A DNA stretch of 64,000 bases from the NCBI GenBank assembly GCA_051530055.1, contig CM121341.1, forward strand, positions 5,000,784 through 5,064,783, written 5' to 3'. Below the pieces are notes generated by a model. That model was not told the DNA's origin. It saw only the letters and a program-made list of their open reading frames with translations, and made no database searches. The DNA comes from Neoechinorhynchus agilis (taxonomy: Eukaryota > Animalia > Acanthocephala). A program made the translations under genes and the position numbers. Position 1 is the first letter of the stretch. Each line of letters opens with the position of its first letter. This document shows positions 2,550 to 54,380 of the stretch, one piece after another.

Positions 2550-3160
2550 TTAATTTTTTTGCTTTTATAACTTTCAGTTTACTAAAGTCAAAGAGGATAG
2601 ATTAATTTTTTTAAAGAAGTTTTAAATTTCCTTTGTTTGCTCATTAAAATTTATTTAACATTCACATGAAGTGGCATTGTCTTAATTTTTTCGTTTATAA
2701 TTTTCAATTTACAAAAGTCAAAAAAGATGGATTAATTTTAAGAGAAGTTTAATTTTTTGCGTTTATAATTTTAAATTTACAAAAGTCAAAAAAGATGGAT
2801 TAATTTTAAGACAAGTTTCATTTTTTTCGTTTATAATTTTCAAATTTCAAAAGTCAAAAAATATAGATTAATTTTAAGACAAGTTTCATTTTTTTCGTTT
2901 ATAATTTTCAAATTTAAAAAGTCAAAAAATATAGATTAATTTTAAGAGAAATTTAATTTTTTTCGTTTATAATTTTCAATTTACAAAAGTCAAAAAAGAT
3001 AGATTAATTTTAAGAGAAGTTTAATTTTTTGCGTTTATAATTTACAAAAGTCAAAAAAGATAGATTAATTTTAAGAGAAGTTTGATTTTTTTCGTTTATA
3101 ATTTTAAATTTACAAAAGTCAAAAAAGATGGATTAATTTTAAGAGAAGTTTTAAATTTCG
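2550..3160. repeat. AT-rich tandem array, ~60-bp unit, ~9-10 degenerate copies
   Basis: Repeated tttttcgtttataattttcaatttacaaaagtcaaaaaagatggattaattttaagagaagtt. Confidence 0.9.
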
Positions 3161-3350: not shown

Positions 3351-3989
3351 ATGGTTGTATTGAATCTGATGTGTTATTCGACAACGTTTGCGTTGTTATT
3401 TCTTTTGAGATTCACAGTCGCAATCACATCTCGGAACACTTTTTCGTTTCGAAACGAGGTCCAAGGATCGAACAGTGATGTATCCGAAGAGTATGGAGTA
3501 GGAAAAGCTCATAATTCCATTAATTCCGTTATAAGCTTGCCTTATCCTGCGTTCCCCCCACTGTTTCATGGAGAAATTTCAACAAATCTTCTCCGAATAT
3601 TTGAGGAAATGAATTCAAAACAAGACGATGATAGCGACCAATCGGAATCAAACGAGGATACAACTACGCCGAAAATTTGTGACAATACTACCGCTTCCAT
3701 TATAAGTGAAGTGAGCAGTCCATATACCAAGCTGGAGATCGTTAGTGCACTTATCGACGAGCTGGAGAAATTAAAAAATGAAGTCGAACAGTCAACTACA
3801 ACTGAGGCTGCATTTGTTGAGACCACATCGAGCATACAACCAGGCGGAGAATCTTATAAAAGTCAAATATCGGATCTAATGAAACAGTTGGGACATGAAG
3901 ACCGATTATTGATGTTAGCCGATCTTATTCGAATGGAAAAGCTCCGATATCTCTGTTACTTAATAGAGAATCAACTAAATTCGTTTTAA
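3351..3989 (+). CDS. Hypothetical secreted protein, 212 aa, intronless
   Basis: Clean ATG ORF with a hydrophobic N-terminus (FALLFLLRFTVA) and an acidic Ser/Thr-rich middle; no family recognised. Confidence 0.6.
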   Translation: MVVLNLMCYSTTFALLFLLRFTVAITSRNTFSFRNEVQGSNSDVSEEYGVGKAHNSINSVISLPYPAFPPLFHGEISTNLLRIFEEMNSKQDDDSDQSESNEDTTTPKICDNTTASIISEVSSPYTKLEIVSALIDELEKLKNEVEQSTTTEAAFVETTSSIQPGGESYKSQISDLMKQLGHEDRLLMLADLIRMEKLRYLCYLIENQLNSF

Positions 3990-4561
3990 AAGGTCTATTT
4001 TGGTATTTAGTTCTGCTTAGTCGTCAAAATATATAATCATTTTTATCGTATGTCTTGATTTCAAGTGGCCATCATTACACAGCTGATTATTTTCGTTTTG
4101 ATCCTGAGATCTCTCCGGAGTGGGCCGGGACTCATGAGTTTCCTATTGCATTCAACAATATTCCGTTTCATTTTGTTGTGAGTCATCTGCAATAATGAAT
4201 TTTAAACACTTAAAAAATGTAACCGGCAAGTTAGACATAAGATAAAATTAATATTTGGGCTCAAGTCCCCTAGACCACCTCGATACAATTCTGCTAGTTT
4301 TAGCTTGGGCAAATATTAAATTATTTTCAAGCTGTTCAACACTTGATACTCATTTTTATTTATCGTTGCACTGCAAACGACAAGACTTTTCTCTTATATT
4401 AATCATTTATTGGATTTATTAACCCGTAATGACATTCAGATTATTAACTCCAATTTTTTTATTACAACTTTGCAGTCTTCGCAAGTTAATTTTTCAGACG
4501 TGGACAAATTTCATTGGACAACAGACATGGCGCATATGCAGGGCTAATTAGCACTCGCACT

Positions 4562-5769: not shown

Positions 5770-5920
5770 TATGTGGAAGTGGGGAAAAATTATATATTAA
5801 AGACTGACTTTAATTTGAAATATTTCGTCCAATCACACTGGACTTCTTCAGTCAATTATTGCTTGAAATATTTCAATTAAAGTGATTCTTGAATATATAA
5901 TTATTCCCCACTTCCACATA
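5770..5920. repeat. Palindromic, MITE-like insert with ~29-bp arms
   Basis: tatgtggaagtggggaaaaattatatatt (5770-5798) is the reverse complement of 5892-5920 with one mismatch. Confidence 0.8.
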
Positions 5921-6272: not shown

Positions 6273-6602
6273 TTATTTCTCTTCATTAAAACTAAGAATC
6301 TTCAGTGGTCTATCATTGATATCTCGATGAATTACCATGGAATAAATACGATCTAATTTGGGAACATGAATCTTTACATCGTATTTCAAACCACGGACGA
6401 CTTGACGAGTAGCGTGAATGATATTATAATCCGCTTTTACGAATCCGGCCATCTTGTTGGTGACAGCATCATGGACAGCTTCTACCAAGTGTTCATCTCG
6501 GACATCTACGGGCTCAGGTCCTCCAAGTAATCTTGACCCTGCTGATGAACACATAATCATTAATTGAACAATAGCAACAGTAGTCACTATCGAAGACATC
6601 AT
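6273..6602 (-). CDS. Secreted cystatin (cysteine protease inhibitor), 109 aa
   Basis: Signal peptide, N-terminal LLGG and the QVVRG (QxVxG) motif; intronless; ATG at 6602. Confidence 0.9.
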   Translation of the reverse strand: MMSSIVTTVAIVQLMIMCSSAGSRLLGGPEPVDVRDEHLVEAVHDAVTNKMAGFVKADYNIIHATRQVVRGLKYDVKIHVPKLDRIYSMVIHRDINDRPLKILSFNEEK

Positions 6603-6659
6603 TTTATACTCTGAAAAAAGACAATGAATCATAAATATCTTTTCACTCCTCAATGATTT

Positions 6660-7258
6660 GCCGTTAAATGTGTGAGTAGCGATTGAAGAGACAATTAAAA
6701 CCTTTTAAAATATTTCGCAATCAATAAAAAAAATTAGTATCGATAACACTGAACGTGTACAATCAAATTTAACGCTCCTCAATGATGAAAAAACAAAATT
6801 AAATTGAAGAGACAATTAAAACCTTTTAAAATATTTCGCAATCAATAAAAAAATTAGTATCGATAACACTGAACGTGTACAATCAAATTTAACGCTCCTC
6901 AATGATGGAAAAACAAAATTAAATTGTACGTTGGTGAATCCTGTCCCCAATGTTTAGAGATACTCATTTATTGCGATTTCACAAGGTTTTAATTGCCGTT
7001 AAAAGTGTGAGTAGCGATTGAAGAGACAATTAAAACCTTTTAAAATATTTCGCGATCAATAAAAAAATTAGTATCGATAACACTGAACGTGTACAATCAA
7101 ATTTAACGCTCCTCAATGATGAAAAAACAAAATTAAATTGAAGAGACAATTAAAACCTTTTAAAATATTTCGCAATCAATAAAAAAAATTAGTATCGATA
7201 ACACTGAACGTGTACAATCAAATTTAACGCTCCTCAATGATGAAAAAACAAAATTTAA
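6660..7258. repeat. Nested duplication: four ~120-bp units inside a ~336-bp duplicated block
   Basis: gaagagacaattaaaacc...aaaattaaatt at ~6686, 6807, 7020 and 7140; gccgttaaa-gtgtgagtagcgatt at 6660 and ~6996. Confidence 0.9.
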
Positions 7259-7270
7259 TGTTCTTTGCAC

Positions 7271-7915
7271 TTACATTCGCGGCGTTAGATTGAACGCATC
7301 CAAACTTACGGAATTCTCGGTGTAACGATAAGTCTCAAAGTCAGGATAGGTTAGGAAAATAGACCGAAAAAGAGATTGAACAGGTTGGACGTTGAAGTGT
7401 TTTACCAAATCAAAAGATCCCAGAATGTTTATGTCTTCTTCACACGAAATCAGTATGCTTTGCACATCAGCGGAGGATTCAGGCAAGTTCCACCAATCCA
7501 TGACCATCCCACCACCATTTTCAATTATATTTTCAACTAAACTTTGACTTGGTTTGACACTCATTGTGCATGCAAAAGTGAATTTCTCAAATATTGGACG
7601 GGGCCGCATAAACGCCGAATCGATATCCAATCGATATGTAAATAGGAAAACTTCTCTGTTCAAGTAATGGTGTTTAGTGTCAGGATCGATGAATCTGCCT
7701 TCTGCTAGAGAATCCTCAAGCCATTTTAAATTGAGAATATATTTATGTTCCTTAAGTTCGGTCCATGTTGATGCCAGAATCAAGGCTAATTTTTTAAGAC
7801 TTAGGGCGGAATGCAAAGTATAAAAACACTTTGAGAATATCCCACTACAAAAGGGAGACGTACGAAGTCTACTCATGCTTGACTCACATTTCTCACGGGA
7901 GAGTCGACGGATCAC
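7271..7915 (-). CDS. Tandem BRCT pair: C-terminal exon of the PAXIP1-like gene or a separate MDC1-like gene; 5' end unresolved
   Basis: YILNLKWLEDSLAEGRFIDP...IFEKFTFACTMSVKPSQSLVENIIENGGGMV...ILISCEEDINI aligns by eye with PTIP BRCT5-6 and MDC1 BRCTs. Confidence 0.7.
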   Translation of the reverse strand: MIRRLSREKCESSMSRLRTSPFCSGIFSKCFYTLHSALSLKKLALILASTWTELKEHKYILNLKWLEDSLAEGRFIDPDTKHHYLNREVFLFTYRLDIDSAFMRPRPIFEKFTFACTMSVKPSQSLVENIIENGGGMVMDWWNLPESSADVQSILISCEEDINILGSFDLVKHFNVQPVQSLFRSIFLTYPDFETYRYTENSVSLDAFNLTPRM

Positions 7916-8391
7916 AAGCCGTTTTCATTATATCTTAAAGTGAGCTCAAGACTTCGTCAAGTAAGACGGAATTGTGAAAAGGTTAACTTACCCACCAAGA
8001 AGTCAAAGGGCCGAAGAATTGTTTCAATAAACTTTCATTTCAACCATGACCTTTTTGTGTAGGGTTTGACAAATATTCTTTTTGTGTACTACTCGAACGA
8101 TTACAATTATTGTACTCGCATAAAATCAAAATTGACGACGATTTAAAATATTTTGATACACACGAAAAAAAAGTATATTTTTGTTTTAAATTTCCTAGAT
8201 TCGATAAGCTATTATTTGTGCAATATAATTTTTTTTCAAGTATAAAAAGTCATAACTTTCAATTGAAGACCATCTAAGTATTTATGGATGAAAGAGTGAT
8301 TATTACAAATGTGTACGATCTTAAAGGAAAACACAGATATTATTTTGTCCTGAGCAGATCTTATACGGGAATAACGAAAAGAATATTGATG

Positions 8392-8632
8392 TTTTTTCCC
8401 CATATACGGCCGAATGGACATCCAAAATCCACCGCGATTTCGCTCTTCACAGCGCTGGTCTGCGCTCAATGTCTCAAGACCGTAGAATCCCTCCGGATTC
8501 CCACGAGAATGAGTTTCCTCTTCCTTTCATCGAGGTATTTCGGCCCCTCCGTACGATCTTGAGACATTGAGCGAGCGCTTTCCAGACCGAATTCGCGGTG
8601 GACTATGTGTCCATTCGCCGTGTATGGAAAAT
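8392..8632. other. ~240-nt imperfect fold-back with a multi-hairpin apex
   Basis: Paired blocks catatacggc/gccgtgtatg, gaatggaca/tgtccattc, tccaccgcga/tcgcggtgga, ggtctg/cagacc and cgctcaatgtctcaaga/tcttgagacattgagcg (17 bp perfect). Confidence 0.8.
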
Positions 8633-8715
8633 ATCCATAAAAAAGACTACCGTCTGAGCCACATATAAAAATTCTAAGAATATTAAGATTACCAAAAAAG
8701 AGATTTTATGAGAAT

Positions 8716-10605
8716 TTACGGAAATCGTCGGGGAAAATGGATTAAATTTAACCAATGAAAACCGAATAATTGAAGCACAATACGGACAAATTCTATACGT
8801 TTAAAATTAAATTTAAAAGTGTCTATAAGATGAAGCCAATGATTTCCGAGCAATCCGTCCAAGGCATTAGAATAAGCTCCGAAATCCTTACATATCAAAT
8901 GTGTGATTCCTGGTACATCCAAACTAGTTACATCGAATCTTCTAGATCCGATTGGACGCTCAGTATAGGCTAGACACATTGCAACCGAAAATAGCCGCTT
9001 CTCTTCTTCGAAATCGAAACCGTCGAAAGCAAGGACATGAGAAGCATGGCAAATTAATTTCCTCTGGACCAAAGATTTCATTGGATTCATCAAGGGTTTT
9101 GAATGGTTCATGTTTAAATCGAATAAGTCGTATCCGTCTAAAAAAGTTGGTTTGCATATCCAAGAAGCAAGCATAAATTCGTTATGTTTTTGATAAATAT
9201 TCAAAACCGACGAATGTTCCTTTGTACAATCGATAGAATCTGCTTTGATACCAAGAAATAAACAAATAAGCCATCCAACGCTCACCGTTCTCACATTTGA
9301 ATATTTAATCTCATCGGATTCATCTTTATATCCGTGACCAGCTGAAACAATCACTGATACGTGTCGAAGAAACCGATCGATCACTTTTCCACCGAGCAAT
9401 TTTACGAGAGTTTCGATAGCAGTCACCTCGTATTCGTCCATGCCACATCCACGAATCAATACAATGCAATTTCTAAGCGGAAGTCGGCTTGAACGTAAAC
9501 ATGAATGAAAACAGGGTAAGTGATGAAGGAGCCAAGGTGTTCTTAAACAATTAAGTTTCAGACAGTCTTCCACAAACGAACTAGTGACCAATTTACAATC
9601 ACTCGTATCCGTCATAAACATCTTAAAGCTTTCAGACGATTGGTTCTCACATACAATAATATTGGATGGCTCGTTTTTAAGGTTCTGGCATCCAATCGAG
9701 GCTGACGCTCCATTACTCCTAACCTCTTCCATCAGTTTTAAAACAAACTTTCGTCCTCGACATATCTCAACTTCTTCGTCAAAAATAAAGCGAAAGTTGG
9801 ACAAAAACAAGTAACCACTAATAGGCTCGAATTCTCGTCCTGAACATCTAGTAGACGAATCACTAACCGTTCCAGTGACTGTAACGATTCTATACATTGG
9901 CCGATAAATCGTCCATTCCATTAAACATCGTTGATTTATACACTCAATCACAAATTGAGGTGTAACAATGCGTACTTTTGAACTGATTTCATGGTGAGGT
10001 TCAAGCAATCCTGAACTAATCAAATAATTGCATTGGTATAGATCTTGTGAACATCGCCCTCCATAATACACAATCATACATTTAAGCTTTAGTTGATCGT
10101 CTAAATCAATCGGCCCTAAATATTGATGCCTTGAAGTCACAAATCCAAACGTCAAGCCGCCGAATATCCTCTTAAATTGATCGGCACCATGGCTAATGCT
10201 AAAAGGTGCCACTGGCAGAATAGTATTGCATCTTAACGACCATCGAACCCAATCGGAAGTTACGACGGGTGGAATTTTGAACAGATTACTGGCTACCAAA
10301 AGCCGCTCTTTATCAGGACAATCACATATCACATGAGTTACCTGTTCGTTCAAGAAAGGACCGTTAAATGTTGCTCCATGAAGTAACAGACATGATTGGA
10401 CCGATTTGTCGATCGGTGCAAGGACACAAAACCGAACGTTTTGAAACAAATCCTGACTGTTTTGAATCTCGTCTTGCGGTTTTAACGGAGGATCTTCGTA
10501 ATCATGAATTTCCATTGAGATTAGCGAATCAGGTTTTGTCTTATAAGGCTGCTGCGTTAAATACTCAAGCGAAACGAACGAAGATATCGGACAAAGTACA
10601 TCCAT
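8716..10605 (-). CDS. PAXIP1: PAXIP1/PTIP-like multi-BRCT protein, N-terminal part
   Basis: DLFQNVRFCVL...VTHVIC...PVVTSDWVRWSLRCNTILPVAPFS (BRCT1), IFGGLTF (BRCT2), FLSNFRFIF (BRCT3), PLRNCIVLIRG (BRCT4). Start at ATG 10605 or 10515; the ORF tail probably reads into an intron. Confidence 0.7.
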   Translation of the reverse strand: MDVLCPISSFVSLEYLTQQPYKTKPDSLISMEIHDYEDPPLKPQDEIQNSQDLFQNVRFCVLAPIDKSVQSCLLLHGATFNGPFLNEQVTHVICDCPDKERLLVASNLFKIPPVVTSDWVRWSLRCNTILPVAPFSISHGADQFKRIFGGLTFGFVTSRHQYLGPIDLDDQLKLKCMIVYYGGRCSQDLYQCNYLISSGLLEPHHEISSKVRIVTPQFVIECINQRCLMEWTIYRPMYRIVTVTGTVSDSSTRCSGREFEPISGYLFLSNFRFIFDEEVEICRGRKFVLKLMEEVRSNGASASIGCQNLKNEPSNIIVCENQSSESFKMFMTDTSDCKLVTSSFVEDCLKLNCLRTPWLLHHLPCFHSCLRSSRLPLRNCIVLIRGCGMDEYEVTAIETLVKLLGGKVIDRFLRHVSVIVSAGHGYKDESDEIKYSNVRTVSVGWLICLFLGIKADSIDCTKEHSSVLNIYQKHNEFMLASWICKPTFLDGYDLFDLNMNHSKPLMNPMKSLVQRKLICHASHVLAFDGFDFEEEKRLFSVAMCLAYTERPIGSRRFDVTSLDVPGITHLICKDFGAYSNALDGLLGNHWLHLIDTFKFNFKRIEFVRIVLQLFGFHWLNLIHFPRRFP

Positions 10606-10956: not shown

Positions 10957-12082
10957 AACCGAACTTATGAATTAAAAAAATTGGTGAGAAATCTGATAAT
11001 GTAAAAAAATGGAAATAAAAAGATTCTAATTCCAGGCTAATTGTAAAATAGACTAATCAGTAGATTTTAAATCGGAGACGATTATAGAATAATAGAACGC
11101 CAAATGATAATTTTGTTTAAAGATCAAAAATTGAGGTGATTTGGAGAAATATTTGAGACCTTTTCGACATAATGAAGAAACCGACCGAACTTATGAATTA
11201 AAAAAATGAGTGAGAAATCTGATAATGTAAAAAAATGGAAATAAAAAGATTCTAATTCCAGGCTAATTGTAAAATAGACTAATCAGTAGATTTTAAATCG
11301 GAGACGATTATAGAATAATAGAACGCCAAATGACAATTTTGTTTAAAGATCAAAAATTGAGGTGATTTGGAGAAATATTTGAGACCTTTTCGACATAATG
11401 AAGAAACCGACCGAACTTATGAATTAAAAAAATGAGTGAGAAATCTGATAATGTAAAAAAATGGAAATAAAAAGATTCTAATTCCAGGCTAATTGTAAAA
11501 TAGACTAATCAGTAGATTTTAAATCGGAGACGATTATAGAATAATAGAACGCCAAATGACAATTTTGTTTAAAGATCAAAAATTGAGGTAATTTGGAGAA
11601 ATATTTGAGACCTTTTCGACATAATGAAGAAACCGACCGAACTTATGAATTAAAAAAATGAGTGAGAAATCTGATAATGAAAAAAATGGAAATAAAAAGA
11701 TTCTAATTCCAGGCTAATTGTAAAATAGACTAATCAGTAGATTTTAAATCGGAGACGATTATAGAATAATAGAACGGCAAATGACAATTTTGTTTAAAGA
11801 TCAAAAATTGAGGTAATTTGGAGAAATATTTGAGACCTTTTCGACATAATGAAGAAACCGACCGAACTTATGAATTAAAAAAATGAGTGAGAAATCTGAT
11901 AATGTAAAAAAATGGAAATAAAAAGATTCTAATTCCAGGCTAATTGTAAAATAGACTAATCAGTAGATTTTAAATCGGAGACGATTATAGAATAATAGAA
12001 CGGCAAATGACAATTTTGTTTAAAGATCAAAAATTGAGGTGATTTGGAGAAATATTTGAGACCTTTTCGACATAATGAAGAA
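10957..12082. repeat. Tandem array, ~225-bp unit, 5 copies
   Basis: cttatgaatt at 10964, 11191, 11416, 11642 and 11867. Confidence 0.95.
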
Positions 12083-13019
12083 AATAATAAAAATAAAAGT
12101 GGTGGAATACTTGATTCGGTACTAATGGACTTCGAAGCACTCTCCGGAATGCAATAAAAACACAACCTAAGCAATTTATTATCCAGAAGGGGTGATAACC
12201 GTTCCGTTTTCCTCTGAAACAATTTAGATAAAAAACATAAAAACATTGTGCTGCGATTATTTTCAGAATGTAATAATGAAATTAAAAAGTGAACAAAACA
12301 ACGATTTATCATTATCCAGAGCAGTTAATTTCTCTTTAAATATTTGTCCTTAAATACGGATTGAAACAACATATCGTAAATTTCAGGAGTTTTTGTTGTA
12401 ATTGCCAATGAAATCGTACGAAACATTGCCATGATCGCCCAAATAAATGCTAGCGGCTTTAATCGAATAACTAATAATGCATTTTCCAACGAAGACTTTC
12501 TCTTCCTAATTAAATTATTTCAATACTTTACGTGAAGTTTGTCGATTTTTCCCGGTTGGGTACTCGTGGATCTTCTGAATATCAGAGAACATCTATAAAT
12601 TGGATAAAATTGATACTTAGGATTTCAAAAGATTTTGTGTCAAATCAATATTTCATGAACGGAGAAACGAGATCGTAAATTCAACGCAAATTGAGCTTTG
12701 TTGGTATTCGTATTAATAAATTAAGTTTTCGAGAGTTACGTTTCAATATTCGTTGAGCTGAAAATATCATTTATATTAGAAAAATTAAAAGCGGATAAAT
12801 TCATGATCTTTTTGAATGTTTTGAAAAATAAAAACTCCCAATTTCAATTCATTTTTAAAATTACCAATCAAAAAAACCACGCATTCACTTTTGCGTTTGA
12901 ACATTGAACTGTTCATGCTTTCCTTATATGGCATAAATTTAGAACTAATTTATTCAATCCGAATTTTAGGAGGCGAAATCGTAGGCATTTATCAAAGTTG
13001 TTGCGAATTAAACACTTGC

Positions 13020-15410
13020 AAGCAACCTTGGGAAAATCGTACACGAGATTGCTCCTCCTCCGAAAACAATGGAAATCAATCGAAATTCCCTCAATTTTTC
13101 CGCCATAAAAAAGAATTGTTCAATGTTCAAACGAGTGATCAAAGTTTCAATAATAAAGAAAACCAGCAAGGAACCTTGGGAAAATCGTACACGAGATTGC
13201 TCCTCCTCCGAAAACAATCGAAATCAATCGAAATTCCCTCCAATTTTTCCGCCATAAAAAAGAATTGTTCAATGTTCAAACGAGTGATCAAAGTTTCAAT
13301 ACTAAAGAAAACCAGCAAGGAACCTTGGGAAAATCGTACACGAGATTGCTCCTCCTCCGAAAACAATGGAAATCAATCGAAATTCCCTCAATTTTCCGCC
13401 ATAAAAAAGAATTGTTCAATGTTCAAACGAGTGATCAAAGTTTCAATACTAAAGAAAACCAGCAAGGAACCTTGGGAAAATCGTACACGAGATTGCTCCT
13501 CTCCGAAAACAATGGAAATCAATCGAAATTCCCTCAATTTTTCCGCCATAAAAAAGAATTGTTCAATGTTCAAACGAGTGATCAAAGTTTCAATACTAAA
13601 GAAAACCAGCAAGGAACCTTGGGAAAATCGTACACGAGATTGCTCCTCCTCCGAAAACCATCGAAATCAATCGAAATTCCCTCAATTTTCCGCCATAAAA
13701 AAGAATTGTTCAATGTTCAAACGAGTGATCAAAGTTTCAATAGTAAAGAAAACTAACAAGAAACCTTGGGAAAATCGTACACGAGATTGCTCCTCCTCCG
13801 AAAACAATGGAAATCAATCGAAATTCCCTCAATTTTCCGCCATAAAAAAGAATTGTTCAATGTTCAAACGAGTGATCAAAGTTTCAATACTAAAGAAAAC
13901 CAGCAAGGAACCTTGGGAAAATCGTACACGAGATTGCTCCTCCTCCGAAAACAATGGAAATCAAATGAAATTCCCTCAATTTTTCCGCCATAAAAAAGAA
14001 TTGTTCAATGTTCAAACGAGTGATCAAAGTTTCAATAGTAAAGAAAACCAGCAAGGAACCTTGGGAAAATCGTACACGAGATTGCTCCTCCTCCGAAAAC
14101 AATGGAAATCAATCGAAATTCCCTCAATTTTTCCGCCATAAAAAAGAATTGTTCAATGTTCAAACGAGTGATCAAAGTTTCAATACTAAAGAAAACCAGC
14201 AAGGAACCTTGGGAAAATCGTACACGAGATTGCTCCTCCTCCGAAAACAATGGAAATCAATTGAAATTCCCTCAATTTTTCCGCCATAAAAAAGAATTGT
14301 TCAATGTTCAAACGAGTGATCAAAGTTTCAATACTAAAGAAAACCAGCAAGGAACCTTGGGAAAATCGTACGAGATTGCTCCTCCTCCGAAAACAATGGA
14401 AATCAATCGAAATTCCCTCAATTTTTCCGCCATAAAAAAGAATTGTTCAATGTTCAAACGAGTGATCAAAGTTTCAATACTAAAGAAAACCAGCAAGGAA
14501 CCTGGGAAACGTAAGATTGCTCCTCCTCCGAAAACAATGGAAATCAATCGAAATTCCCTCAATTTTTCCGCCATAAAAAAGAATTGTTCAATGTTCAAAC
14601 GAGTGATCAAAGTTTCAATACTAAAGAAAACCAGCAAGGAACCTTGGGAAAATCGTACACGAGATTGCTCCTCCTCCGAAAACAATGGAAATCAATCGAA
14701 ATTCCCTCAAATTTTCCGCCATAAAAAAGAATTGTTCAATGTTCAAACGAGTGATCAAAGTTTCAATAGTAAAGAAAACTAACAAGAAACCTTGGGAAAA
14801 TCGTACACGAGATTGCTCCTCCTCCGAAAACAATGGAAATCAATCGAAATTCCCTCAATTTTTCCGCCATAAAAAAGAATTGTTCAATGTTCAAACGAGT
14901 GATCAAAGTTTCAATAGTAAAGAAAACCAGCAAGGAACCTTGGGAAAATCGTACACGAGATTGCTCCTCCTCCGAAAACAATGGAAATCAATCGAAATTC
15001 CCTCAATTTTTCCGCCATAAAAAAGAATTGTTCAATGTTCAAACGAGTGATCAAAGTTTCAATAGTAAAGAAAACTAACAAGCAACCTTGGGAAAATCGT
15101 ACACGAGATTGCTCCTCCTCCGAAAACAATGGAAATCAATCGAAATTCCCTCAAACTTTCGGCCATAAAAAAGAATTGTTCAATGTTCAAACGAGTGATC
15201 AAAGTTTCAATAGTAAAGAAAACCAGCAAGGAACCTCGATAAAGGCATAAGATTGCTCCTCCTCCGAAAACAATGGAAATCAAATGAAATTCCTTCAATT
15301 TTTCCGCCATAAAAAAGAATTGTTCAATGTTCAAAAGTGTGATCAAAGTTTCACGAGCTTACATAGCAAAGAAAACTAACAAGCAACGTCGATAGAAGCG
15401 TACAAGATTG
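13020..15410. repeat. Tandem array, ~148-bp unit, ~16 copies with two interspersed variants
   Basis: ttgggaaaatcgtacacgagattgctcctcctccg period 147-149; variants aatactaaagaaaaccagcaagg versus aatagtaaagaaaactaacaaga. Confidence 0.97.
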
Positions 15411-17778: not shown

Positions 17779-18654
17779 CATCCGCTCTCGAAATTTTATT
17801 TTTAAAAAGAAATAGAATAAATAAAGTACAAAACGTGAAATCACCACCGTCCGCAAAATCTTAGCTTCTCTCCCTCCTCGGCTGTCGCTATCACGTTAGC
17901 AGCATTGCCTCGTTGAACTGCAAGCGACAAAGATTTTTATTCTTTGAACATTATATATTTAAAAAAATTAAATCGCAGCTCGCCGCCGGTTGTGGTCGTG
18001 TTCAGGCTTTTCGAAGAAGATCGAAGCTCAATGAAGTGTTGAGCAAAAAAAACGAACACGAATAGAACTAATGTTTAACGAAGCAATTAGAGATTAGCAA
18101 TCTTGATGCGGAATTGATTAGTATTCGGATGGGCAAGTTATTTCAGTGTACATTTGCAATCTCATGAGATGGAGAAAAACGAATTTCGGCGATTGAAAAA
18201 CTACAAAAGATGCAGGCTAGGAGCCATCGGAAGCAGAGGAAGTAAGCCTAAGACATTCGAGAGACATTAGGCGCGGATGCACTAATCCGGATGAACTTTA
18301 TATTAAAGCGTTTTCTAATCGAAAAATGCTTAAAGGCGGTTTCGACTCTTTTTAATAAAAGGAACCTCATGATTCGGTAAACCTGTGCGTGAGGAATTTA
18401 GCATGGGAAGAATAAAAATGGTTTAAGACTTGAACATGGTATTTAATCAGTGAGTTTAAAACTTGTGAAACAATAATTGATTTTCAACAAGACGTTTTAT
18501 TTATTTTGTTTAAGAAGAGGATCCATGTACCTCTGGGTCCTCGTGATCACTTTAGAGTTGATGACGGATCCGGAGAGGTGGAAGACGGATCCGGAGAGTT
18601 ACGTTCGACGACGACGACGATAGACCTCATGATTGATCAAGTTTTTGTTTTCGA

Positions 18655-19895
18655 AAGTTGACACTTGGAATAATAGTGTTTTAATGACAAAAAGAAAATC
18701 TTTACCCTGAGAGATTTCGCCGTCTTACGGCTTCCTCGGGAATCTACAAAAAAACGAGTGGAGATGTGAAGTTTAAGTTAAATAGCGACATTGAAATATC
18801 GAAAGATCGTCTCTCTTGTTGAGTAGTTCTGGAGCTTTGTCTGATGCCCTGGGATAAAATTGGTGCCTCGGCGATATATAGTTCTCGCCCCGGGTCCTTG
18901 GCCAAAACCCAAACTCGCGTGTGGAGAGTTTCACTTCTCCATCGCTGTGGCACTTTGAGTGGTGCTTTGTCCATGGTATAGCCATGATTTTGCGCCTTGG
19001 GAGCAAATTACAGACAAGATTTTATTTTAGCTCGAAGAAACGTGGTTTGCGAACGATGTTTGGCCGATGACAGACAGGCAAAATTGAACGCTTTTAAAAT
19101 TTATCTAAAGATAAATCCTTTTAATCTTCGAACGTCCTTTCTTTATGGTACAGTCAAGTTTTTTGGATGGACACTTGGCCGGGGGCTGTTGTAATGACAA
19201 AAAGAAAATCTTTATTTCAAGAGCTTTCGCTGTCGTGCGACGGAGAGTTCTGGACATCAGACAAAGCTCCAGAACTGCTTAACAAAAGAGACGAACTTTC
19301 CATACTTCAATGTCGCTACTTTAACTTAAAACTTCACATCTCCACGCGTTTTTAATGTAGATTCCTCAGGGAGCCTTAAGACGACGAAATCTCTCGGAAT
19401 AAAGACTTTCTTTTTGTCAATAAAACGGTTTTATTCCAAGTGTCAATTTTGGAAAATAAAAATTTGAGTTTAAAGATGATAATTTCACATCAAAAAAAGG
19501 AGCGTAATTCACAATTCGGCTTACGTCCTTTCTTTATGGTACAGTCAAGTTTTTGGATGGACACTTGGCCGGGTGTAATGACAAAAAAAAATCTTTATTT
19601 CAAGAGCTTTCGCCGTCGTGCGACGGAGAGTTCTGGGCACTCAAACAGAGCTCCAGAACTACTTAACCAAAGAGATGAACTTTCCATACTTCAATGTCGT
19701 TACTTTAACTTAAAACTTCACATCTCCACGCGTTTTTAATGTAGATTCCTCAGAAGACGACGAAATCTCTCGAAATAAAGATTCTCTTTTTGTCAATAAA
19801 ACGGTTTTATTCCAAGTGTCAATTTTGGAAAATAAAAACTTGAGTTTAAAGATGATAATTTCACATCAAAAAAAGGAGCGTAATTCACAATTCGA
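18655..19895. mobile_element. Non-coding dispersed element in fold-back plus tandem arrangement
   Basis: 18656-18850 is an inverted copy of 19250-19447; ~19450-19895 repeats the preceding block; a homologous copy lies inverted at 36360-36905. Confidence 0.75.
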
Positions 19896-20099
19896 CTTTT
19901 TGACCATCGAACATGAAAAACTGAGATCAGTCAAGAAAACGAAACGATGCAACATGATCAGCGATCTGACAATCGAATGAAATGCTGACGATCACTTGGA
20001 AACGTGATTTTAAATGCTTTGTACAATTCTTTCCGGACAAATGACGTAAGACGCGAACATTGACGTAGCTGCCCAAAGAAACTTCTTCGATATTCTGAA

Positions 20100-21395
20100 A
20101 TGGTTAAGGTTGCGATCGTCGGTTGCCTCCATGGCGAGTTGAATTCTGTTTATGAAGACATCGAATTGATCGAAAAGGAGATGAATGTGCAAATTGAACT
20201 CGTTCTGGTATGTGGGGATTTCGAAGCGATCCGCAATCATCAAGACCTTGACTCGGTAGCGGTTCCCAGTAAATATCGTAAACTTGGGGACTTTTGGTCT
20301 TACTATTCAAGGATCCAGACAGCTCCTAGAATGACCATCTTTATTGGCGGTAATCATGAATGTTCAAATTTCTTAACTGAGCTTCCTTATGGAGGATGGG
20401 TAGCTGAAAACATCTACTATTTGGGTCGCAGTGGAGTTGTAAATTTCCGTGGAATTCGAATTGCAGGATTGAGTGGGATTTATAAGGCTCGTGACTTTAA
20501 ACGTGGAATCTATGAAGTGCCTCCGTTTACTCAAGAGACCGTCCGTTCATGCTATCATGTCAGAAATTTGGACATATTACGATTGAGCCTCCTTAACCAA
20601 CCTGATGTTGTGCTAACTCACGACTGGCCACGAGGAGTTCATCGATTCGGCACATCGGAAGATATAAACACTTTAAGAAGTCAAAAAGAGCACCTTTGTG
20701 AGGATATGGACTCGGATGCTCTTGGTAGTCCAGCGTCCGAAATGCTTCTTGAAAAACTCACACCTTCCTACTGGTTTGCAGCTCATCTACACACCAACTT
20801 CTCAGCCGTTATTCAACATTCAACCGGCGCGGTTACTAAATTTCTCGCTTTAAATAAAGTCAAGGAAGATTATTCCCACATACGAGTGATAGACATTGCA
20901 GCAGACCAAGGAGAATTTTGTTATGATCAACAGTGGATTTCGATTCTCAAACAAACAGATTCGATGATCAACACTGATCCAGTCGAGCAAACCAACTTAA
21001 AATCGGTTGAACCTGAATCAATCGACAACGATGATTTCGGAGACTTACGAATTCCTCAATATCAACAAATCTTCGAGTGGACAGCGTCGCCTTCGCTTAC
21101 GGACGTTGAAGACCGCTACGATAATCCATTTGAATATGTACCATTCGAAAACCCACAAACTGCTGCATTTTGCCGAAAATTCAACGTACGAGATCCCCTT
21201 AGGCTGCGATTGAGCAATCTTGGACGACAAATGATCGACATTGTTAATGCTAGAAGGATGTGTGAAAAGAAACTTATTCAATGGATCAATTCTGAAGAAA
21301 TTGGGCAATGCAGTGACCTTGAGGAAAACGAAGAGCAAGGTCCAGAAAACGATGAAGAAAAGGCCGGTGAAGTTTCGGCGATTGATGAAAATTGA
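20100..21395 (+). CDS. DBR1: Lariat debranching enzyme, 431 aa, intronless
   Basis: VGCLHGEL, CGDFEAIRN, GGNHE, THDWP and AAHLH metallophosphoesterase motifs, plus the lariat-recognition segment YxVPPF. Confidence 0.97.
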   Translation: MVKVAIVGCLHGELNSVYEDIELIEKEMNVQIELVLVCGDFEAIRNHQDLDSVAVPSKYRKLGDFWSYYSRIQTAPRMTIFIGGNHECSNFLTELPYGGWVAENIYYLGRSGVVNFRGIRIAGLSGIYKARDFKRGIYEVPPFTQETVRSCYHVRNLDILRLSLLNQPDVVLTHDWPRGVHRFGTSEDINTLRSQKEHLCEDMDSDALGSPASEMLLEKLTPSYWFAAHLHTNFSAVIQHSTGAVTKFLALNKVKEDYSHIRVIDIAADQGEFCYDQQWISILKQTDSMINTDPVEQTNLKSVEPESIDNDDFGDLRIPQYQQIFEWTASPSLTDVEDRYDNPFEYVPFENPQTAAFCRKFNVRDPLRLRLSNLGRQMIDIVNARRMCEKKLIQWINSEEIGQCSDLEENEEQGPENDEEKAGEVSAIDEN

Positions 21396-22290: not shown

Positions 22291-22504
22291 CTATCAGAAC
22301 TCGAGTGTTCATGATGATCGTTTCCTATTCTTTATAAATTAACAAATAAAATGTGTTATTATAAGATACGATCTTTTTAGAATGAAGTACAGCGATTGAG
22401 CAATCAAAATTACTGTGGATTTGTATTTTAAACGTTTGATTCCGGTCGACTTCGATGACTAAGGTGCCTGTCTGAAATTTAAGTTTTTGCTTAACAATCT
22501 CTTT

Positions 22505-23228
22505 TTTTTAAAGTTTTACTGGCAAGCCGGTATTGTTATCATCATTCAATTTTAGTCAATCCCTTTCTTGTCCGGCTATCAAAATTAATCCGGTGCCCAC
22601 TGCTCACAGTATTGGACACTATTGCCGAACTCAGTAGTCTTTAAGGCTGCTCTCAGGATTCATGAACATCCGCGATTAATAACATTTTTTTCGATTAAAG
22701 TCGTTTCGAACTTCGTCGGATTCATCATCAGTTTGTTACTAATAGACGCTATTGGATATTTAGGCTGGACTTAATTGTTTTCTCCAAGGACGGCTTGAAG
22801 TTTGAGAAATCCCATCCATGGTTTCGCTCTCCCTTCATTTTCTTTTTTTCAAAGTTTTCCGATATTATTTTAAAATACCGGCTTGCCAGTAAAACTTAAA
22901 ATAGAACACAGCGCTCACCCTGAGTCGAATAACTGGCTGAGTTTGACATTTCGTAGTTGTGTCGAGGTGGTCACCCGTGATCCCGATTTTGGGAATCCGT
23001 TACCACCAAAGACGCACAGCCAAAGGAGACGAAATACCTCGTTGAAAGGAGGAAACTCACTGATGAGTCCCGCCTCCTCGGGAGGTATCTGAAGATCCGC
23101 AGGAATGTACAAACTCTTTTATCGGATGCATTAGAGATTATGTGGTTATATCACTTCTCTGATTTAATTGGTTTGGCTTTATGCCTAAATAAATAAGCCG
23201 GACAACTAAAGGGATTGACTAAAATTTA
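22505..23228. other. Interleaved inverted repeats around a GC-richer structured island
   Basis: Arm A ~22505-22533 pairs with 22872-22900; arm B ~22548-22580 pairs with 23195-23228; local stems at 22935-23095. Confidence 0.7.
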
Positions 23229-23755
23229 ATGATATTCTCATTTTTTATTCGAAATTCTTCAAACGTAATTTTCGCTTTAGATTGCCAAACCTTTTGCACG
23301 CAATAAAATAATATACAAACGTTTTAAGAGTGTATCACCATCCATATCTGATAAAATATTTCATCGCCGATTCTAGATCGCATTTGAATCATGTCTTTTC
23401 TGGTTGGAAATTTTTAGACTTATGCCCCTTGTAGTGTTTTTTCTACGATTCAAATTTCTGACAAGAAGATTGCCCCTATTAATTGCGTTAAATATAATTG
23501 CTTCGTTTCATATGGACTAACTTCATTGTTTTCCGCTTAACAGACATTACTCATTATATTGATTTCCTAATTTTTTTACTATAAGCTGAAATTATTTTGA
23601 ACAACGTCAATGGTACCCATCATTATTAAAATCACAATTTGAACCCTGACTTTGCCCGAGAGTAAATTAGATCAAATTAATCGGAATTTCTTTTTTAGAC
23701 GCAACGAAGCAAGTTGCTTTTAATATTCGATGATCTGCATAGTGGTTTCTGGCCG

Positions 23756-26278: not shown

Positions 26279-26904
26279 TCGGATTGCGCGGAATGAACGA
26301 TCGAGTGGATCAACTAGAGAAGAGTCGATCACGGTTCCCGAGTTATAAATTCGATTTTCGTAATACGATGAAGATTCCTTGTTTTGGCGATTATTAGAAG
26401 GAGGCTGAAATTAAAAGGGGCCAAGGTTAAACAGGAGTTGCCGAGAATTGTGCTCGTTCACATTTGTACCTTTTTTAACAGGGGGTGTGTTCAAACGAGC
26501 AATTAAAATGTTTGAAGGTGGTAGTGGCAGCGGAACACAAAATGAATCACCAACACAAAACTCAACGCTATAGAGAAATTGAGGCGAAAACAGTCTTGAA
26601 GGACACGAAAACGAGGTTCAAAAACAATCCAAGTAGCAAGAGAGTTTCAAAATCTTACATGCTTCTCACAGGGACGAACTAGCGTTGCACTGACATATCT
26701 TTCACTAGAGGATTGTCGTGGAAAAAAGGAGTAGGAGGAAGAGAAGTGCGTCAGATTTAAATAGCGCGTCTAAAAAATGTCAAATTCCAACCAATTTGGA
26801 CATAGAACGTCCTCAATATTCTGGGTCGTAATTCGGGGAACATTCCATTGGTAAGTCATGAATAATATTTTAATTCGAGCCAAAAGATTTTATTCATCGA
26901 AAAC

Positions 26905-29900
26905 AAATATAGGAGCTCTGAACTTCACCCTCTTTTGTACGTCTCAGACATCCGAGTTCTTAGTTTCTATTTTTCGTTTTGTGGATTTATACGACGCGAA
27001 ACTATGCAAAAAGTCCAGATAAAATTACTTAATTTTTATTCTCTAAGAAGAAACCTTTTTGAAATTTCTCAAAACAATGTTTTAAAAAGAAATCCGAGGT
27101 CCCAGACCAAACAATTCATCGAAAATCAATCTAAGAGCTCTGAACTTCACCTTTTTTGTACGTCTCAGACATCCGAGTGTTCAGTTTCTATTGTTTCTTT
27201 TTGTGGATTTACACAAGATGAAAATATACAAAAAAAAGCCCAGATAAAATTACTTCCTTTTTATTCTCCAAGCAGAAACCTTTTTGAAATTTTTTAAAAC
27301 AATGTTTTAAAAAGAAATCCGAGGTCCCAGACCAAACAATTCATCAAAAATCAATCTAAGAGCTCTGAACGTCACCCTTTTTTGTACGTCTCAGACATCC
27401 GATTGTTCAGTTTCTATTGTTTCTTTTTGTGGATTTACACAAGATGAAAATAGACAAAAAGCCCAGATAAAATTACTTCCTTTTTATTCTCCAAGAAGAA
27501 ACCTTTTTGAAATTTCTCAAAACAATGTTTTAAAAAGAAATCCGAGGTCCCAGACCAAACAATTCATCGAAAATCAATCTAAGAGCTCTGAACGTCACCC
27601 TTTTTTGTACGTCTCAGACATCCGAATGTTCAGTTTCTATTGTTTCTTTTTGTGGATTTACACAAGATGAAAATAGACAAAAAAGCCCAGATAAAATTAC
27701 TTCCTTTTTATTCTCTAAGAAGAAACCTTTTTGAAATTTCTCAAAACAATGTTTTAAAAAGAAATCCGAGGTCCCAGACCAAACAATTCATCGAAAATCA
27801 ATCTAAGAGCTCTGAACGTCACCTTTTTTGTACGTCTCAGACATCCGAATGTTCAGTTTCTATTGTTTCTTTTTGTGGATTTACACAAGATGAAAATAGA
27901 CAAAAAAGCCCAGATAAAATTACTTAATTTTTATTCTCTAAGAAGAAACCTTTTTGAAATTTCTCAAAACAATGTTTTAAAAAGAAATCCGAGGTCCCAG
28001 ACCAAACAATTCATCGAAAATCAATCTAAGAGCTCTGAACGTCACCCTTTTTTGTACGTCTCAGACATCCGAATGTTCAGTTTCCATTGTTTCTTTTTGT
28101 GGATTTACACAAGATGAAAATAGACAAAAAGCCCAGATAAAATTACTTAATTTTTATTCTCTAAGAAGAAACCTTTTTGAAATTTCTCAAAACAATGTTT
28201 TAAAAAGAAATCCGAGGTCCCAGACCAAACAATTCATCGAAAATCAATCTAAGAGCTCTGAACGTCACCCTTTTTTGTACGTCTCAGACATCCGAATGTT
28301 CAGTTTCCATTGTTTCTTTTTGTGGATTTACACAAGATGAAAATAGACAAAAAAGCCCAGATAAAATTACTTAATTTTTATTCTCTAAGAAGAAACCTTT
28401 TTGAAATTTCTCAAAACAATGTTTTAAAAAGAAATCCGAGGTCCCAGACCAAACAATTCATCGAAAATCAATCTAAGAGCTCTGAACGTCACCTTTTTTT
28501 ATCGTCTCAGACATCTGAATGTTCAGTTTCCATTGTTTCTTTTTGTGGATTTACACAAGATGAAAATATACAAAAAAGCAGATAAAATTACTTAATTTTT
28601 ATTCTCTAAGTAGAAACCTTTTTGAAATTTCTCAAAACAATGTTTTAAAAGAAATCCGAGGTCCCAGACCAAACAATTCATAAAATCAATCTAAGAGCTC
28701 TGAACGTCACCCTTTTTTGTACGTCTCAGACATCCGAATGTTCAGTTTCTATTGTTTCTTTTTGTGGATTTACACAAGATGAAAATAGACAAAAAGCCCA
28801 GATAAAATTACTTCCTTTTTATTCTCTAAGAAGAAACCTTTTTGAAATTTCTCAAAACAATGTTTTAAAAAGAAATCCGAGGTCCCAGACCAAACAATTC
28901 ATCAAAAATCAATCTAAGAGCTCTGAACGTCACCCTTTTTTGTACGTCTCAGACATCCGAGTGTTCAGTTTCTATTGTTTCTTTTTGTGGATTTATACAA
29001 GACGAAAATAGACAAAAAAGCCCAGATAAAATTACTTCCTTTTTATTCTCTAAGTAGAAACCTTTTTGAAATTTCTCAAAACAATGTTTTAAAAAGAAAT
29101 CCGAGGTTGGGGACCAAACAATTCATCAAAAATCAATCTAAGAGCTCTGAACGTCACCCTTTTTTGTACGTCTCATCCGAGTGTTCAGTTTCTATTGTTT
29201 CTTTTTGTGGATTTACACAAGATGAAAATAGACAAAAAAGCCCAGATAAAATTACTTCCTTTTTATTCTCCAAGAAGAAACCCTTTAGAAATTTCTCAAA
29301 AAAATATTTTAAAAGGAAATCCGAGGTCCCAGACCAAACAATTCATCGAAAATCAATCTAAGAGCTCTGAACGTCACCCCCTTTTTGTACGTCTCAGACA
29401 TCTGAATGTTCAGTTTCTATTGTTTCTTTTTGTGGATTTACACAAGATGAAAATAGACAAAAAAGCCCAGATAAAATTACTTCCTTTTTATTCTCCAAGA
29501 AGAAACCCTTTAGAAATTTCTCAAAAAAATATTTTAAAAGGAAATCCGAGGTCCCATACCAAACAATTCATCGAAAATCAATCTAAGAGCTCTGAACGTC
29601 ACCCTTTTTTGTACGTCTCAGACATCTGAATGTTCATTTTCCATTGTTTCTTTTTGTGGATTTATACAACGCGAAACTATACAAAAAGCCCAGATAAAAT
29701 TGGTTCCTTTTTTCTCTAAGAAGAAACCTTTTTGAAATTTCTCAAAACAATGTTTTAAAAAGAAATCCGAGGTCCCAGACCAAACAATTCATCGAAAATC
29801 AATCTAAGAGCTCTGAACGTCACCCTTTTTTGTACGTCTCAGATATCCGGATGTTCATTTTCCATTGTTTCTTTTTGTGGATTTACACAAGATGAAAATA

Positions 29901-29968
29901 GACAAAAAGTCCAGATAAAATTACTTCCTTTTTATTCTCTAAGAAGAAACCTTTTCGAAATTTCTCAG
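26905..29968. repeat. Tandem array, ~223-bp unit, ~14 copies
   Basis: gagctctgaac recurs at 26913, 27135, 27360, 27583 and onward to ~29808. Confidence 0.97.
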
Positions 29969-31464: not shown

Positions 31465-33720
31465 TGAACCTTTTGGTCAATCGGGGGCGGCGAGGGAGGC
31501 GAGGGAGGGACGTTGGAGGGGAATTCATGGGATGAAATGGGGAAAGACATCCGGCACAATCGAGGGCGGCGAGGGCGGCGAGGGAGGGACGCTGGAGGGG
31601 AATTCATGGGATGAAATGGGGAAAGACATCCGACACAATCGAGGGCGGCGAGGGCGGCGAGGGAGGGACGTTGGAGGGGAATTCATGGGATGAAATGGGC
31701 CAATAAAACACAATGAGCCTTTTAGTCAATCGAGGATCGCGATTCGGTGGGCGGCGAGGGGGGAATTCATTGGATGAAATGGGAAAACATCCGACACAAT
31801 CGAGGGTCGCGAGGGCGGCGAGGGAGGGACGTTGGAGGGGAATTCATTGGATGAAATGGGGAAAGACATCCGGCACAATCGAGGGCGGCGAGGGCGGCGA
31901 GGGAGGGACGTTGAGGGGAATTCATTGGATGAAATGGGAAAAAACATCCAACACAGACCTTGGTCAATCGAGGATCGCGAGGGCGGCGAGGGAGGGACGT
32001 TGGAGGGGAATTCATTGGATGAAATGGGAAAAAACATCCAACACAACGAACCTTTTGGTCAATCGAGGATCGCGAGGCGGCGAGGGAGGGACGTTGGAGG
32101 GGAATTCATTGGATGAAATGGGAAAACATCCAACACAGAACCTTTTGGTCAATCGAGGGTCGCGAGGGCGGCGAAGGAGGGACGTTGGAGGGGAATTCAT
32201 TGGATGAAATGGGAAAAAACATCCGACACAATCGAGGGCGGCGAGGGCGGCGAAGGAGGGACGTTGGAGGGGAATTCATTGGATGAAATGGGCCAATAAA
32301 ACACAATGAGCCTTTTAGTCAATCGAGGATCGCGATTCGGTGGGGGGGGCGGCGAGGGAGGGGAATTCATTGGATGAAATGGGAAAAGACATCCAACACA
32401 GTAAACCTTTTGGTCAATCGAGGGTCGCGAGGGAGGCGAGGGAGGGACGTTGGAGGGGAATTCATTGGATGAAATGCCAATAAAACACAATGAGTCTTTT
32501 AGTCAATCGAGGATCGCGATTCGGTGAGCAGGGAGGGGAATTCATTGGATGCAATGGGCCAATAAAACACAATGAGCCTTTTAGTCAATCGAGGATCGAA
32601 ATTCGGTGAGGGGCGGCGAGGGAGAGGGAATTCTTTGGATGAAATGGGAAAAAACATCCGACACAGTGAACCTTTTGGTCAATCGAGGGTCGCGATTCGG
32701 TGAGGGGGCGGCGAGGGAGGGAAATTCATTGGATGAAATGGGAAAAACATCCGACACAATCGAGGGCGGCGAGGGTGGCGAGGGGGAATTCATTGGATGA
32801 AATGGGCCAATAAAACACAATGAGCCTTTTAGTCAATCGAGGATCGCGATTCGGTGAGGGGGGCGGCGAGGGAGGGGAATTCATTGGATGAAATGGGAAA
32901 AAACATCCAACACAGTGAACCTTTTGGTCAATCGAGGGTCGCGAGGGCGGCGAAGGAGGGACGTTGGAGGGGAATTCATTGGATGAAATGGGAAAAAACA
33001 TCCGACACAATCGAGGGCGGCGAGGGCGGCGAAGGAGGGACGTTGGAGGGGAATTCATTGGATGAAATGGGCCAATAAAACACAATGAGCCTTTTAGTCA
33101 ATCGAGGATCGCGATTCGGTGAGGGGCGGCGAGGGAGGGGAATTCATTGGATGAAATGGGCCAATAAAACACAATGAGCCTTTTAGTCAATCGAGGATCG
33201 AAATTCGGTGAGGGGCGGCGAGGGAGAGGGAATTCTTTGGATGAAATGGGAAAAAACATCCGACACAGTGAACCTTTTGGTCAATCGAGGGTCGCGATTC
33301 GGTGAGGGGGCGGCGAGGGAGGGAAATTCATTGGATGAAATGGGAAAAAACATCCGACACAATCGAGGGCGGCGAGGGTGGCGAGGGGGAATTCATTGGA
33401 TGAAATGGGCCAATAAAACACAATGAGCCTTTTAGTCAATCGAGGATCGCGATTCGGTGAGGGGGGGCGGCGAGGGAGGGGAACTCATTGGATGAAATGG
33501 GAAAAGACATCCGACACAATCGAGGGTCGCGAGGGCGGCGAGGGAGGGACGTTGGGAGGGGAATTCATTGGATGAAATGGGAAAAAGCATCCAACACAAC
33601 GAACCTTTTGGTCAATCGAGGGTCGCGAGGGCGGCGAGTAAGGGGAATTTATCTGATGAAATGGGCCAACGTGCAGATTATCGATTTGACAATGAGCGTT
33701 TAGTCAATGGAGGCTTCTTT
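31465..33720. repeat. GC-rich modular minisatellite (constant core plus alternative spacers)
   Basis: Roughly 25 copies of gggaattcattggatgaaatggg, each followed by one of about three spacer modules; ~600-bp higher-order duplication (32606 versus 33208). Confidence 0.95.
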
Positions 33721-36359: not shown

Positions 36360-36905
36360 TCGTGCCCAGAACTCTCCGTCGCACGACGACGAAATCTCTC
36401 GGAATAAAGATTTTCTTTTTGTCATTACACCCGGCCAAGTGTCCATCAAAAAAACCTGACAAGCCGAATTGTGAATTGCATTCTTTTTTTGATGTGAAAT
36501 TATCATCTTTAAACTCAAATTTTTATTTTCCAAAGTTGACACTTGGAATAAGACCGTTTTAATGACAAAAAGAAAGTCTTTATTCCGAGAGATTTCGTCG
36601 TCTTAAGGCTCCCTGAGGAATCTACATTAAAAACGAGTGGAGATGTGAAGTTTTAAGTTAAAGTAGCGACATTGAAGTATGGAAAGTTCGTTTCTTTTGT
36701 TAAGCAGTTCTGGAGCTTTGTCTGATGCCCAGAACTCTCGCTTCGATTCCATGCTCATTCCCGATTGATTCATCAGCATATTTATCCCAATATAAATTTC
36801 TGGGAAAGTGTTGTTCAATTTTGCCTATCTATAGATTAATTTGCTATTGTCATCGGCCAAAACATTGTCCGCAGATCATCGCGTAGACCACGTTTCTTCG
36901 AGTTC
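36360..36905 (-). mobile_element. Second copy of the 19-kb dispersed element
   Basis: Reverse complement matches ~19030-19090 and ~19250-19635 (e.g. ctcgaagaaacgtggt, gacaaagctccagaactgcttaac). Confidence 0.8.
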
Positions 36906-54292: not shown

Positions 54293-54380
54293 AGACCCCA
54301 AATCGCACTTGCCAAACTACGATCTATTAACGAAAAGAAAATCTAACTAAGTCTTAATTGTAACTGCTATCGATATTGTA

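Follow-up and report, generated by a model that had tools for sequence, protein, structure and literature searches.

An unclassified non-coding repeat, probably mobile, in at least three copies on a chromosome of the acanthocephalan Neoechinorhynchus agilis

The core of a fold-back island in the genome of Neoechinorhynchus agilis recurs at two or more other loci and, on balance, the three islands are best read as copies of a non-coding interspersed repeat that is lineage-specific and unclassified and probably represents a non-autonomous mobile element; the fold-back (copy A) would be a palindromic derivative. The DNA analysed, here called the window, is a stretch of 64,000 nt on the 19.4-Mb chromosome CM121341.1 (assembly GCA_051530055.1), and is A+T-rich (G+C ~35%). 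An initial annotation of the window had offered two readings of the core, a structured RNA or DNA motif or the core of a small mobile element. The second is near the one favoured here, in that a family of at least three copies is present whose mobility we infer, and the first is unsupported.

For a phylum that has been studied very little, the repeat is one more unclassified family to annotate, and what looked like a lead to a new ribozyme or structured RNA proves false. The case also illustrates a general trap, as a short "core" of high similarity at a fold-back tip need not be a selected RNA motif and can instead be the sole surviving, or a transplanted, piece of a decaying repeat.

A family of at least three copies

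As initially annotated, the core at 8542..8510 (-) in copy A shares 29 of 30 positions with 23030..23059 (+) in copy B, apart from a 3-nt indel. Its sequence is CGAAATACCTCGATGAAAGGA[AGA]GGAAACTCA, where the bracketed AGA is the indel. Local alignment lengthens the match to 39 nt at 92% identity (AGG[G/A]G[C/A]CGAAATACCTCG[A/T]TGAAAGGA(AGA)GGAAACTCA). When up to three mismatches are allowed, the first 21 nt of the core occur exactly twice in the window, compared with 0.01 occurrences expected from shuffled sequences. Identity across the 39 nt is far above that of the neighbouring sequence and ends abruptly; the flanks of A and B, already described as unrelated, show no alignable similarity in pairwise alignments. 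The single recurrence implied by the initial annotation was an undercount, given that a third copy (C) is present at 4165..4134 (-). It was first detected, weakly (E 0.17), by an nhmmer search with a profile of the A and B cores.

Copies B and C are homologous over about 145-230 nt, including head, core and tail, at roughly 52-68% identity, and are thus two copies of one element of roughly 180-230 nt. Copy B opens with the head block TTGTGTCGAGGTGGTC, and the corresponding block of C is at 4288..4273, with the core at ~4165..4134. The alignment of 22994-23138 in B with 4201-4058 in C (~145 nt) scores 75, against 27.6 +/- 3.9 for shuffles. A profile built from B and C matches C at E 9e-37, a value that includes C among the source sequences of the profile. 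One block, GGAAACTCA(CTGA)TGAGTCCCG, is exactly common to both, and an upstream block, TTGTRTCGAGGTGGTC, is present in B and C only. The copies are graded in decay, B being G+C-rich and C A+T-rich, with an AT-rich insertion of ~50 nt relative to B and a T6 run.

Between B and C, conservation of the core does not exceed that of the sequence beside it (~66% identity, vs ~72% just downstream, by reading of the alignment). Copies C and A both carry three bases that are absent from B, and C agrees with B downstream of ACTCA, where A diverges. Given this mixed sharing, the "core" is simply the part common to all three copies. In copy A, the B+C profile matches solely 8546-8476 (E 1.2e-4 and 4.7e-6 in two profile searches), which corresponds to the palindrome's apex loop and the first paired bases next to it. 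There is an incongruence here, as A and B are 92% identical in the core and B and C about 66-76% in the core region, yet A lacks the flanks common to B and C. To account for it, one has to invoke a chimeric origin, gene conversion over a short tract, or selection acting on the core.

As expected of an interspersed repeat, the three homologous copies occupy unrelated sites (one intron and two intergenic spacers) and occur in both orientations. The genes on either side of copy B are convergent, and copy C lies ~70 nt downstream of its neighbouring gene, on the opposite strand (Table 1). Copy A is within an intron of ~830 nt (8762..7934) of the minus-strand BRCT gene, in sense orientation. This placement was obtained by mapping the annotated protein of a haplotig onto the window, with the GT donor and a downstream micro-exon read directly. 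Host genes in the window have large exons. The model of the BRCT gene encodes 941 aa on the chromosome, where it reaches 6273, and 817 aa on the haplotig, where it stops at 7271; the extra part crosses a 120-nt tandem repeat (6682-7259), and database searches with the protein found no relative except itself. The haplotig, which is 33 kb long and, like CM121341.1, contains an exact match to the DBR1 ORF, is 99-99.8% identical to the chromosome, and copies A and B are identical in both. Because of this near-identity, it is uninformative on conservation or insertion polymorphism.

Table 1. Features of the repeat family and its surroundings, in positions of the window.
Feature	Position	Strand	Basis or context
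Copy A, 240-nt imperfect DNA palindrome	8392..8632		Inverted repeats, folds, G:U pairs on both strands
Family-homologous part of copy A (~71 nt)	8476..8546	-	B+C profile, 39-nt alignment to B; contains core 8542..8510
Candidate flanking direct repeat of A, AAGAATATTGA	8378..8388		Partner AAGAATATTAA at 8676-8686; encloses 287 nt; weak
Copy B, best-preserved copy	22957..23140	+	B-C alignment, head block, shared block; intergenic, DBR1/RRM
5' half of 12-bp inverted repeat in B, GAGTTTGACATT	22939..22950	+	Outer helix of MFE fold
3' half of inverted repeat in B, AATGTACAAACTC, then TTTT	23103..23115	+	Outer helix of MFE fold
Copy C, decayed, A+T-enriched	4058..4288	-	nhmmer, alignment to B, profile; intergenic
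Candidate flanking direct repeat of C, ATAATCATTTTTAT	4033..4046		Partner ATACTCATTTTTAT at 4346-4359; encloses 299 nt; weak
DBR1 gene	20100-21395	+	Gene call; left neighbour of copy B
RRM gene	24563 onward	-	Gene call; right neighbour of copy B
Gene near copy C	3351-3989	+	Gene call; opposite strand to copy C
BRCT-domain gene	6273-10605	-	Hosts copy A in intron
Satellites	2682-3151, 6682-7259, 10958-12083, 13018-15353, 26892-29967, 38981-40284, 45378-47895, 48947-50604, 51676-54293, 61074-62431

Profile searches of the window and of an additional 6.65 kb on its left side identified no fourth copy. The region 22578-22873 was considered and not counted, as its similarity to the 3' part of B scores 49, where shuffles score 33 +/- 5.6 and reach 52. 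The segment 22627-22683 faintly resembles the 3' part of B (AACTCA..AGTC..TGAA.ATCCGC), is in the same orientation ~425 nt upstream of it and, from this resemblance, may be a fourth, very decayed fragment of the family. Around copy B, a contiguous segment of 76 nt (22502-22577) is repeated in inverted orientation as two separate halves, at 22874-22906 and 23196-23233. The halves are swapped, with the reverse complement of the first to the left of B and that of the second to the right. The swapped order makes this neither a simple inversion nor an empty site, and B does not read straightforwardly as an insertion into the 76-nt segment. The arrangement would be compatible with fragments of a short tandem unit or with circular permutation of a copy.

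All three copies are found within 19 kb (4-23 kb of the window), with none in the other 41 kb or in the left flank, and this clustering means that local duplication could have produced them instead of transposition. The copies would then be relics of an old local segmental duplication of non-coding DNA that were never mobile, and a gene-conversion tract of ~40 nt would recently have homogenised the A-B core. The abrupt end of the 39-nt match, which is well above the identity of neighbouring family sequence, is consistent with such a tract, and there are more scrambled local duplications around B. We nevertheless regard this origin as unlikely. The contexts of the copies (an intron and two different intergenic spacers) are unrelated, the copies are short and sharply bounded G+C-rich islands within A+T-rich DNA, and gene conversion normally requires more extensive flanking homology than that between A and B.

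The palindrome of copy A and the question of a conserved fold

The fold-back initially annotated at 8392-8632 is real: the predicted MFE is -133 kcal/mol on the minus strand (z -13.4) and -121 kcal/mol on the plus strand (z -12.2). Its arms, at ~8392-8484 and ~8552-8632 (about 93 and 81 nt), enclose a unique apex of 67 nt. The arms have no match in B, C or the remaining window, and alignments of the arms to the head or tail of B and C, as their possible source, were not significant. Each strand of A carries a 33-codon ORF with an ATG start (8466-8567 on the minus strand, 8469-8570 on the plus strand), and both products start with MSQDR and finish with LRH. The palindromic symmetry makes these twin ORFs an artefact rather than evidence of coding.

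Both A and B fold about equally well on either strand, and the G:U pairs of A are spread over both, which points to inverted repeats in DNA rather than to an RNA selected on one strand. We suggest that the palindrome of A was made at the DNA level, perhaps because the core, which is prone to form hairpins, was the centre of an inverted duplication or of snap-back synthesis; alternatively, a fragment of the family may have been captured inside a foldback element. With such an origin, the fold-back would be a symmetry of double-stranded DNA and not a selected RNA fold.

The other copies fold less well, B moderately (plus strand, z -3.96; minus strand, z -2.94) and C no better than shuffles (z 0.03). 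Three consecutive hairpins had been described in the core of A and B. They can be drawn in both, but they are not the MFE folds and are not preserved in copy C, where the hairpin 2 loop (ACTCATGAGT) and the greater part of hairpin 3 have been lost. In the MFE fold of A, CCUC pairs with an upstream GAGG and not as in the hairpin described. In that of B, the three hairpins are fused into one long hairpin by the pairings AUACCUC...GAGGUAU, GGAGG/CCUCC and ACUCA/UGAGU.

We placed the three helices on an alignment of A, B and C, where 63.2% of cells can pair, compared with 62.2% after shuffling (three sequences, hence low power). A single double change was found across the three copies, and most of the pairing in helices 2 and 3 is disrupted in the other copies. 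RNAalifold yields a weak consensus for 119 columns (-10 kcal/mol; covariation term, +0.45). Compensatory base-pair changes in support of a conserved structured RNA are lacking from this three-sequence, low-power alignment. Conserved secondary structure across the copies is therefore not supported by these alignments and predicted folds, which is an absence of support and not proof of absence. The proposed family of structured RNA or DNA motifs fares poorly overall: there is no covariation, pairing equals that of shuffled sequence, C is unstructured, and A and B fold on both strands. Many decayed copies devoid of covariation and of expression had been named as an outcome that would speak against it, and, as far as three copies allow, decay and a lack of covariation are what we observed.

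Because selection on the core is one way to account for the incongruence between the A-B and B-C comparisons, the structured-RNA reading stays alive at low probability. Under it, the islands would belong to one family of small, structured ncRNAs or functional DNA hairpins, with a conserved core of ~40-70 nt carried on a closing helix of variable sequence and with C as a pseudogene. The closing helices of A (~100 bp) and B (12-16 bp, then UUUU) are indeed unrelated in sequence, and the core is near the centre of the inverted repeats in both. Copy B beats its shuffles, A is intronic and in sense orientation, the 39-nt core is far better kept between A and B than its surroundings, and a stem AUACCUC/GAGGKAU can be drawn in both. 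We consider this reading improbable all the same, since the reverse strands fold nearly as well, the local hairpins do not covary, C has lost the parts noted above and does not fold, and Rfam searches were negative (see below). The internal T4 of B and T6 of C further argue against Pol III transcripts. More doubtful again is the specific version in which A and B would be functional members of an acanthocephalan-specific structured non-coding RNA or DNA-hairpin element, with a closing helix of any sequence and widely differing length, and C a dead copy. If the structured-RNA reading were true, the islands would represent a new lineage-specific class of RNA.

Known RNA families and coding potential

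The initial remark that the core matches no snRNA, SRP, RNase P/MRP, rRNA or complete ribozyme agrees with our searches. Rfam 15 gave no match at gathering scores across the whole window, and at E<=10 the A, B and C islands gave only chance-level matches to lncRNA or miRNA models (5-18 bits). ARAGORN identified no tRNA, and models for tRNA, 5S and SRP RNA had no match at E<=10 in the three islands. The same was true of the hammerhead, twister, pistol, hatchet, HDV-like and other ribozyme models. Resemblances to hammerhead, HDV-like, RNase P/MRP, SRP, snRNA/Sm-site, C/D-box and 5S sequences were inspected by eye and dropped, as the motifs are not common to all three copies and Rfam is negative.

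Two of these resemblances are described here. The CR-I/P4 region of RNase P and MRP RNA has the motif GNAANNUC, and the sequence GGAAACUC, invariant in all three copies, resembles it. Unlike RNase P and MRP RNAs, the copies are too short, no CR-V partner was found in them, and the RNaseP_nuc and RNase_MRP models were unmatched even at E<=10. The hammerhead ribozyme has a catalytic core of CUGANGA ... GAAA in this order, helices I-III and a UH cleavage site. Copy B contains the motif CUGAUGAG at 23060-23067 and CGAAA at 23030-23034; at the position of CUGAUGAG, A has UUCUCG and C a deletion. That the family encodes a self-cleaving, hammerhead-like ribozyme, or a retrozyme- or viroid-like element, is suggested by these two motifs and by the rod-like form of A, but is highly improbable because GAAA lies 5' of CUGAUGA (the wrong order for a single unit), helices II and III cannot be drawn, CUGAUGAG is missing from A and C, and no ribozyme model matches. 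The sequence AUUUUGG recalls an Sm site and TGGCTSAG the A box of Pol III promoters; neither has any backing from Rfam or ARAGORN.

Coding is an equally faint prospect. A short conserved exon or micro-ORF might be proposed from the two A-B indels (3 nt and 6 nt, both multiples of 3) and from ORFs of 33-92 aa that span the core on both strands; however, of the six frames that cross the core five are open, as expected in a G+C-rich island and hence not discriminating, and the intron that contains A is annotated. Peptides from all six frames of A and B, joined by X-spacers before the search, had no relative (E<=10) in a set of 5.8 billion proteins that includes the annotated N. agilis proteome, and three exact look-ups of core-spanning ORFs found no gene product on record.

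Exact-pattern scans of metagenome, prokaryote-genome and viral collections returned only chance matches that could not be extended. A literature search with 11-mers of the core yielded nothing but primers, and the N. agilis genome paper treats repeats only in terms of masking.

Features of mobile elements and the closest known systems

The favoured interspersed repeat would have a length of ~180-300 nt, with the core as its best-preserved block; it has at least three copies within 19 kb. Copy B is the most intact, C is an old copy decayed toward A+T, and A retains ~71 nt between two unrelated inverted arms of ~100 nt. These copies probably arose by insertion of a non-autonomous mobile element, either through retroposition or as a DNA element of the MITE/foldback type.

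Candidate flanking direct repeats were identified for A and C (Table 1). They are A/T-rich and enclose similar lengths. At random control sites, flanking repeats of >=11 nt with at most one mismatch were found in 19.5% of cases and repeats of >=14 nt in 8.8%, so that the candidates of A (11 nt) and C (14 nt) are within the range given by random sites. For copy B, only a gapped flanking direct repeat was found. Reading of the sequence at 8392/8632 revealed no direct repeat that directly abuts the A palindrome; the nearest candidate is asymmetric, at distances of ~3 nt and 44 nt from the two ends. Lacking from the set A, B and C are common terminal inverted repeats, and a clear poly(A) or simple-repeat tail was not found in the copies, which end in GGGGAAAAAACA (A) and AAATAAATAA (B). 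None of these features establishes a hallmark of transposons.

Other repeats are frequent in the window. Palindromic, MITE-like elements occur at 37416-37654 (240 nt, arms of ~100 nt), 5770-5920 (151 nt, 46-nt arms), 36385-36602 (a pair of 43-nt arms with 98% complementarity) and 18637-19467 (118-nt arms, 595 nt apart). A second dispersed family, of ~380-400 nt and with an internal palindrome of its own, is represented by a tandem pair at 19132-19898 and by an inverted copy 17 kb away at 36362-36739 (~91% identity). Nearly every intergenic spacer has a different satellite (Table 1), with periods of 68-447 nt and units that are mostly 90-99% identical; it is unusual for tandem arrays unrelated to one another to lie so densely between genes. 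The region 31476-33600, within the annotated span of the RRM gene model, consists of G-rich, strongly strand-skewed and degenerate tandem repeats (periods 79-265 nt, GC skew up to +0.33) and is the most divergent between chromosome and haplotig, at 75-94% identity. Given so many palindromes, dispersed repeats and satellites, elements of this kind are ordinary in the N. agilis genome.

Two groups of mobile elements are the closest known systems for the interspersed repeat favoured here. Foldback elements and MITEs are recognised by shared terminal inverted repeats and an abutting target-site duplication of fixed length. Neither is seen here: the three copies share no terminal inverted repeats (B has only a 12-bp inverted repeat and C none), and no fixed-length duplication abuts the palindrome. 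Like these elements, the copies are short, non-coding and dispersed in intronic and intergenic DNA, copy A consists of long inverted arms around a unique centre, and the window contains several more palindromic elements of 150-240 nt.

The second group is the SINEs with a conserved central domain, which include the CORE-, V-, Deu-, Nin- and Meta-SINE superfamilies. A Pol III-type head derived from tRNA, 5S or 7SL RNA, as is expected of a SINE, was not identified by ARAGORN or Rfam. The copies also differ from SINEs in that there are T-runs inside A and C, no clear tail and no partner LINE seen, and the candidate flanking repeats have lengths that control sites also reach. Like the central-domain SINEs, the islands are ~200-300 nt long and non-coding, and combine a conserved internal block with flanks that differ between A and B/C. 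The candidate flanking repeats are A/T-rich and variable in length, and in A and B alike 8-mers resembling the A box (TGGCTSAG), identified by eye, precede the core by ~100-120 nt.
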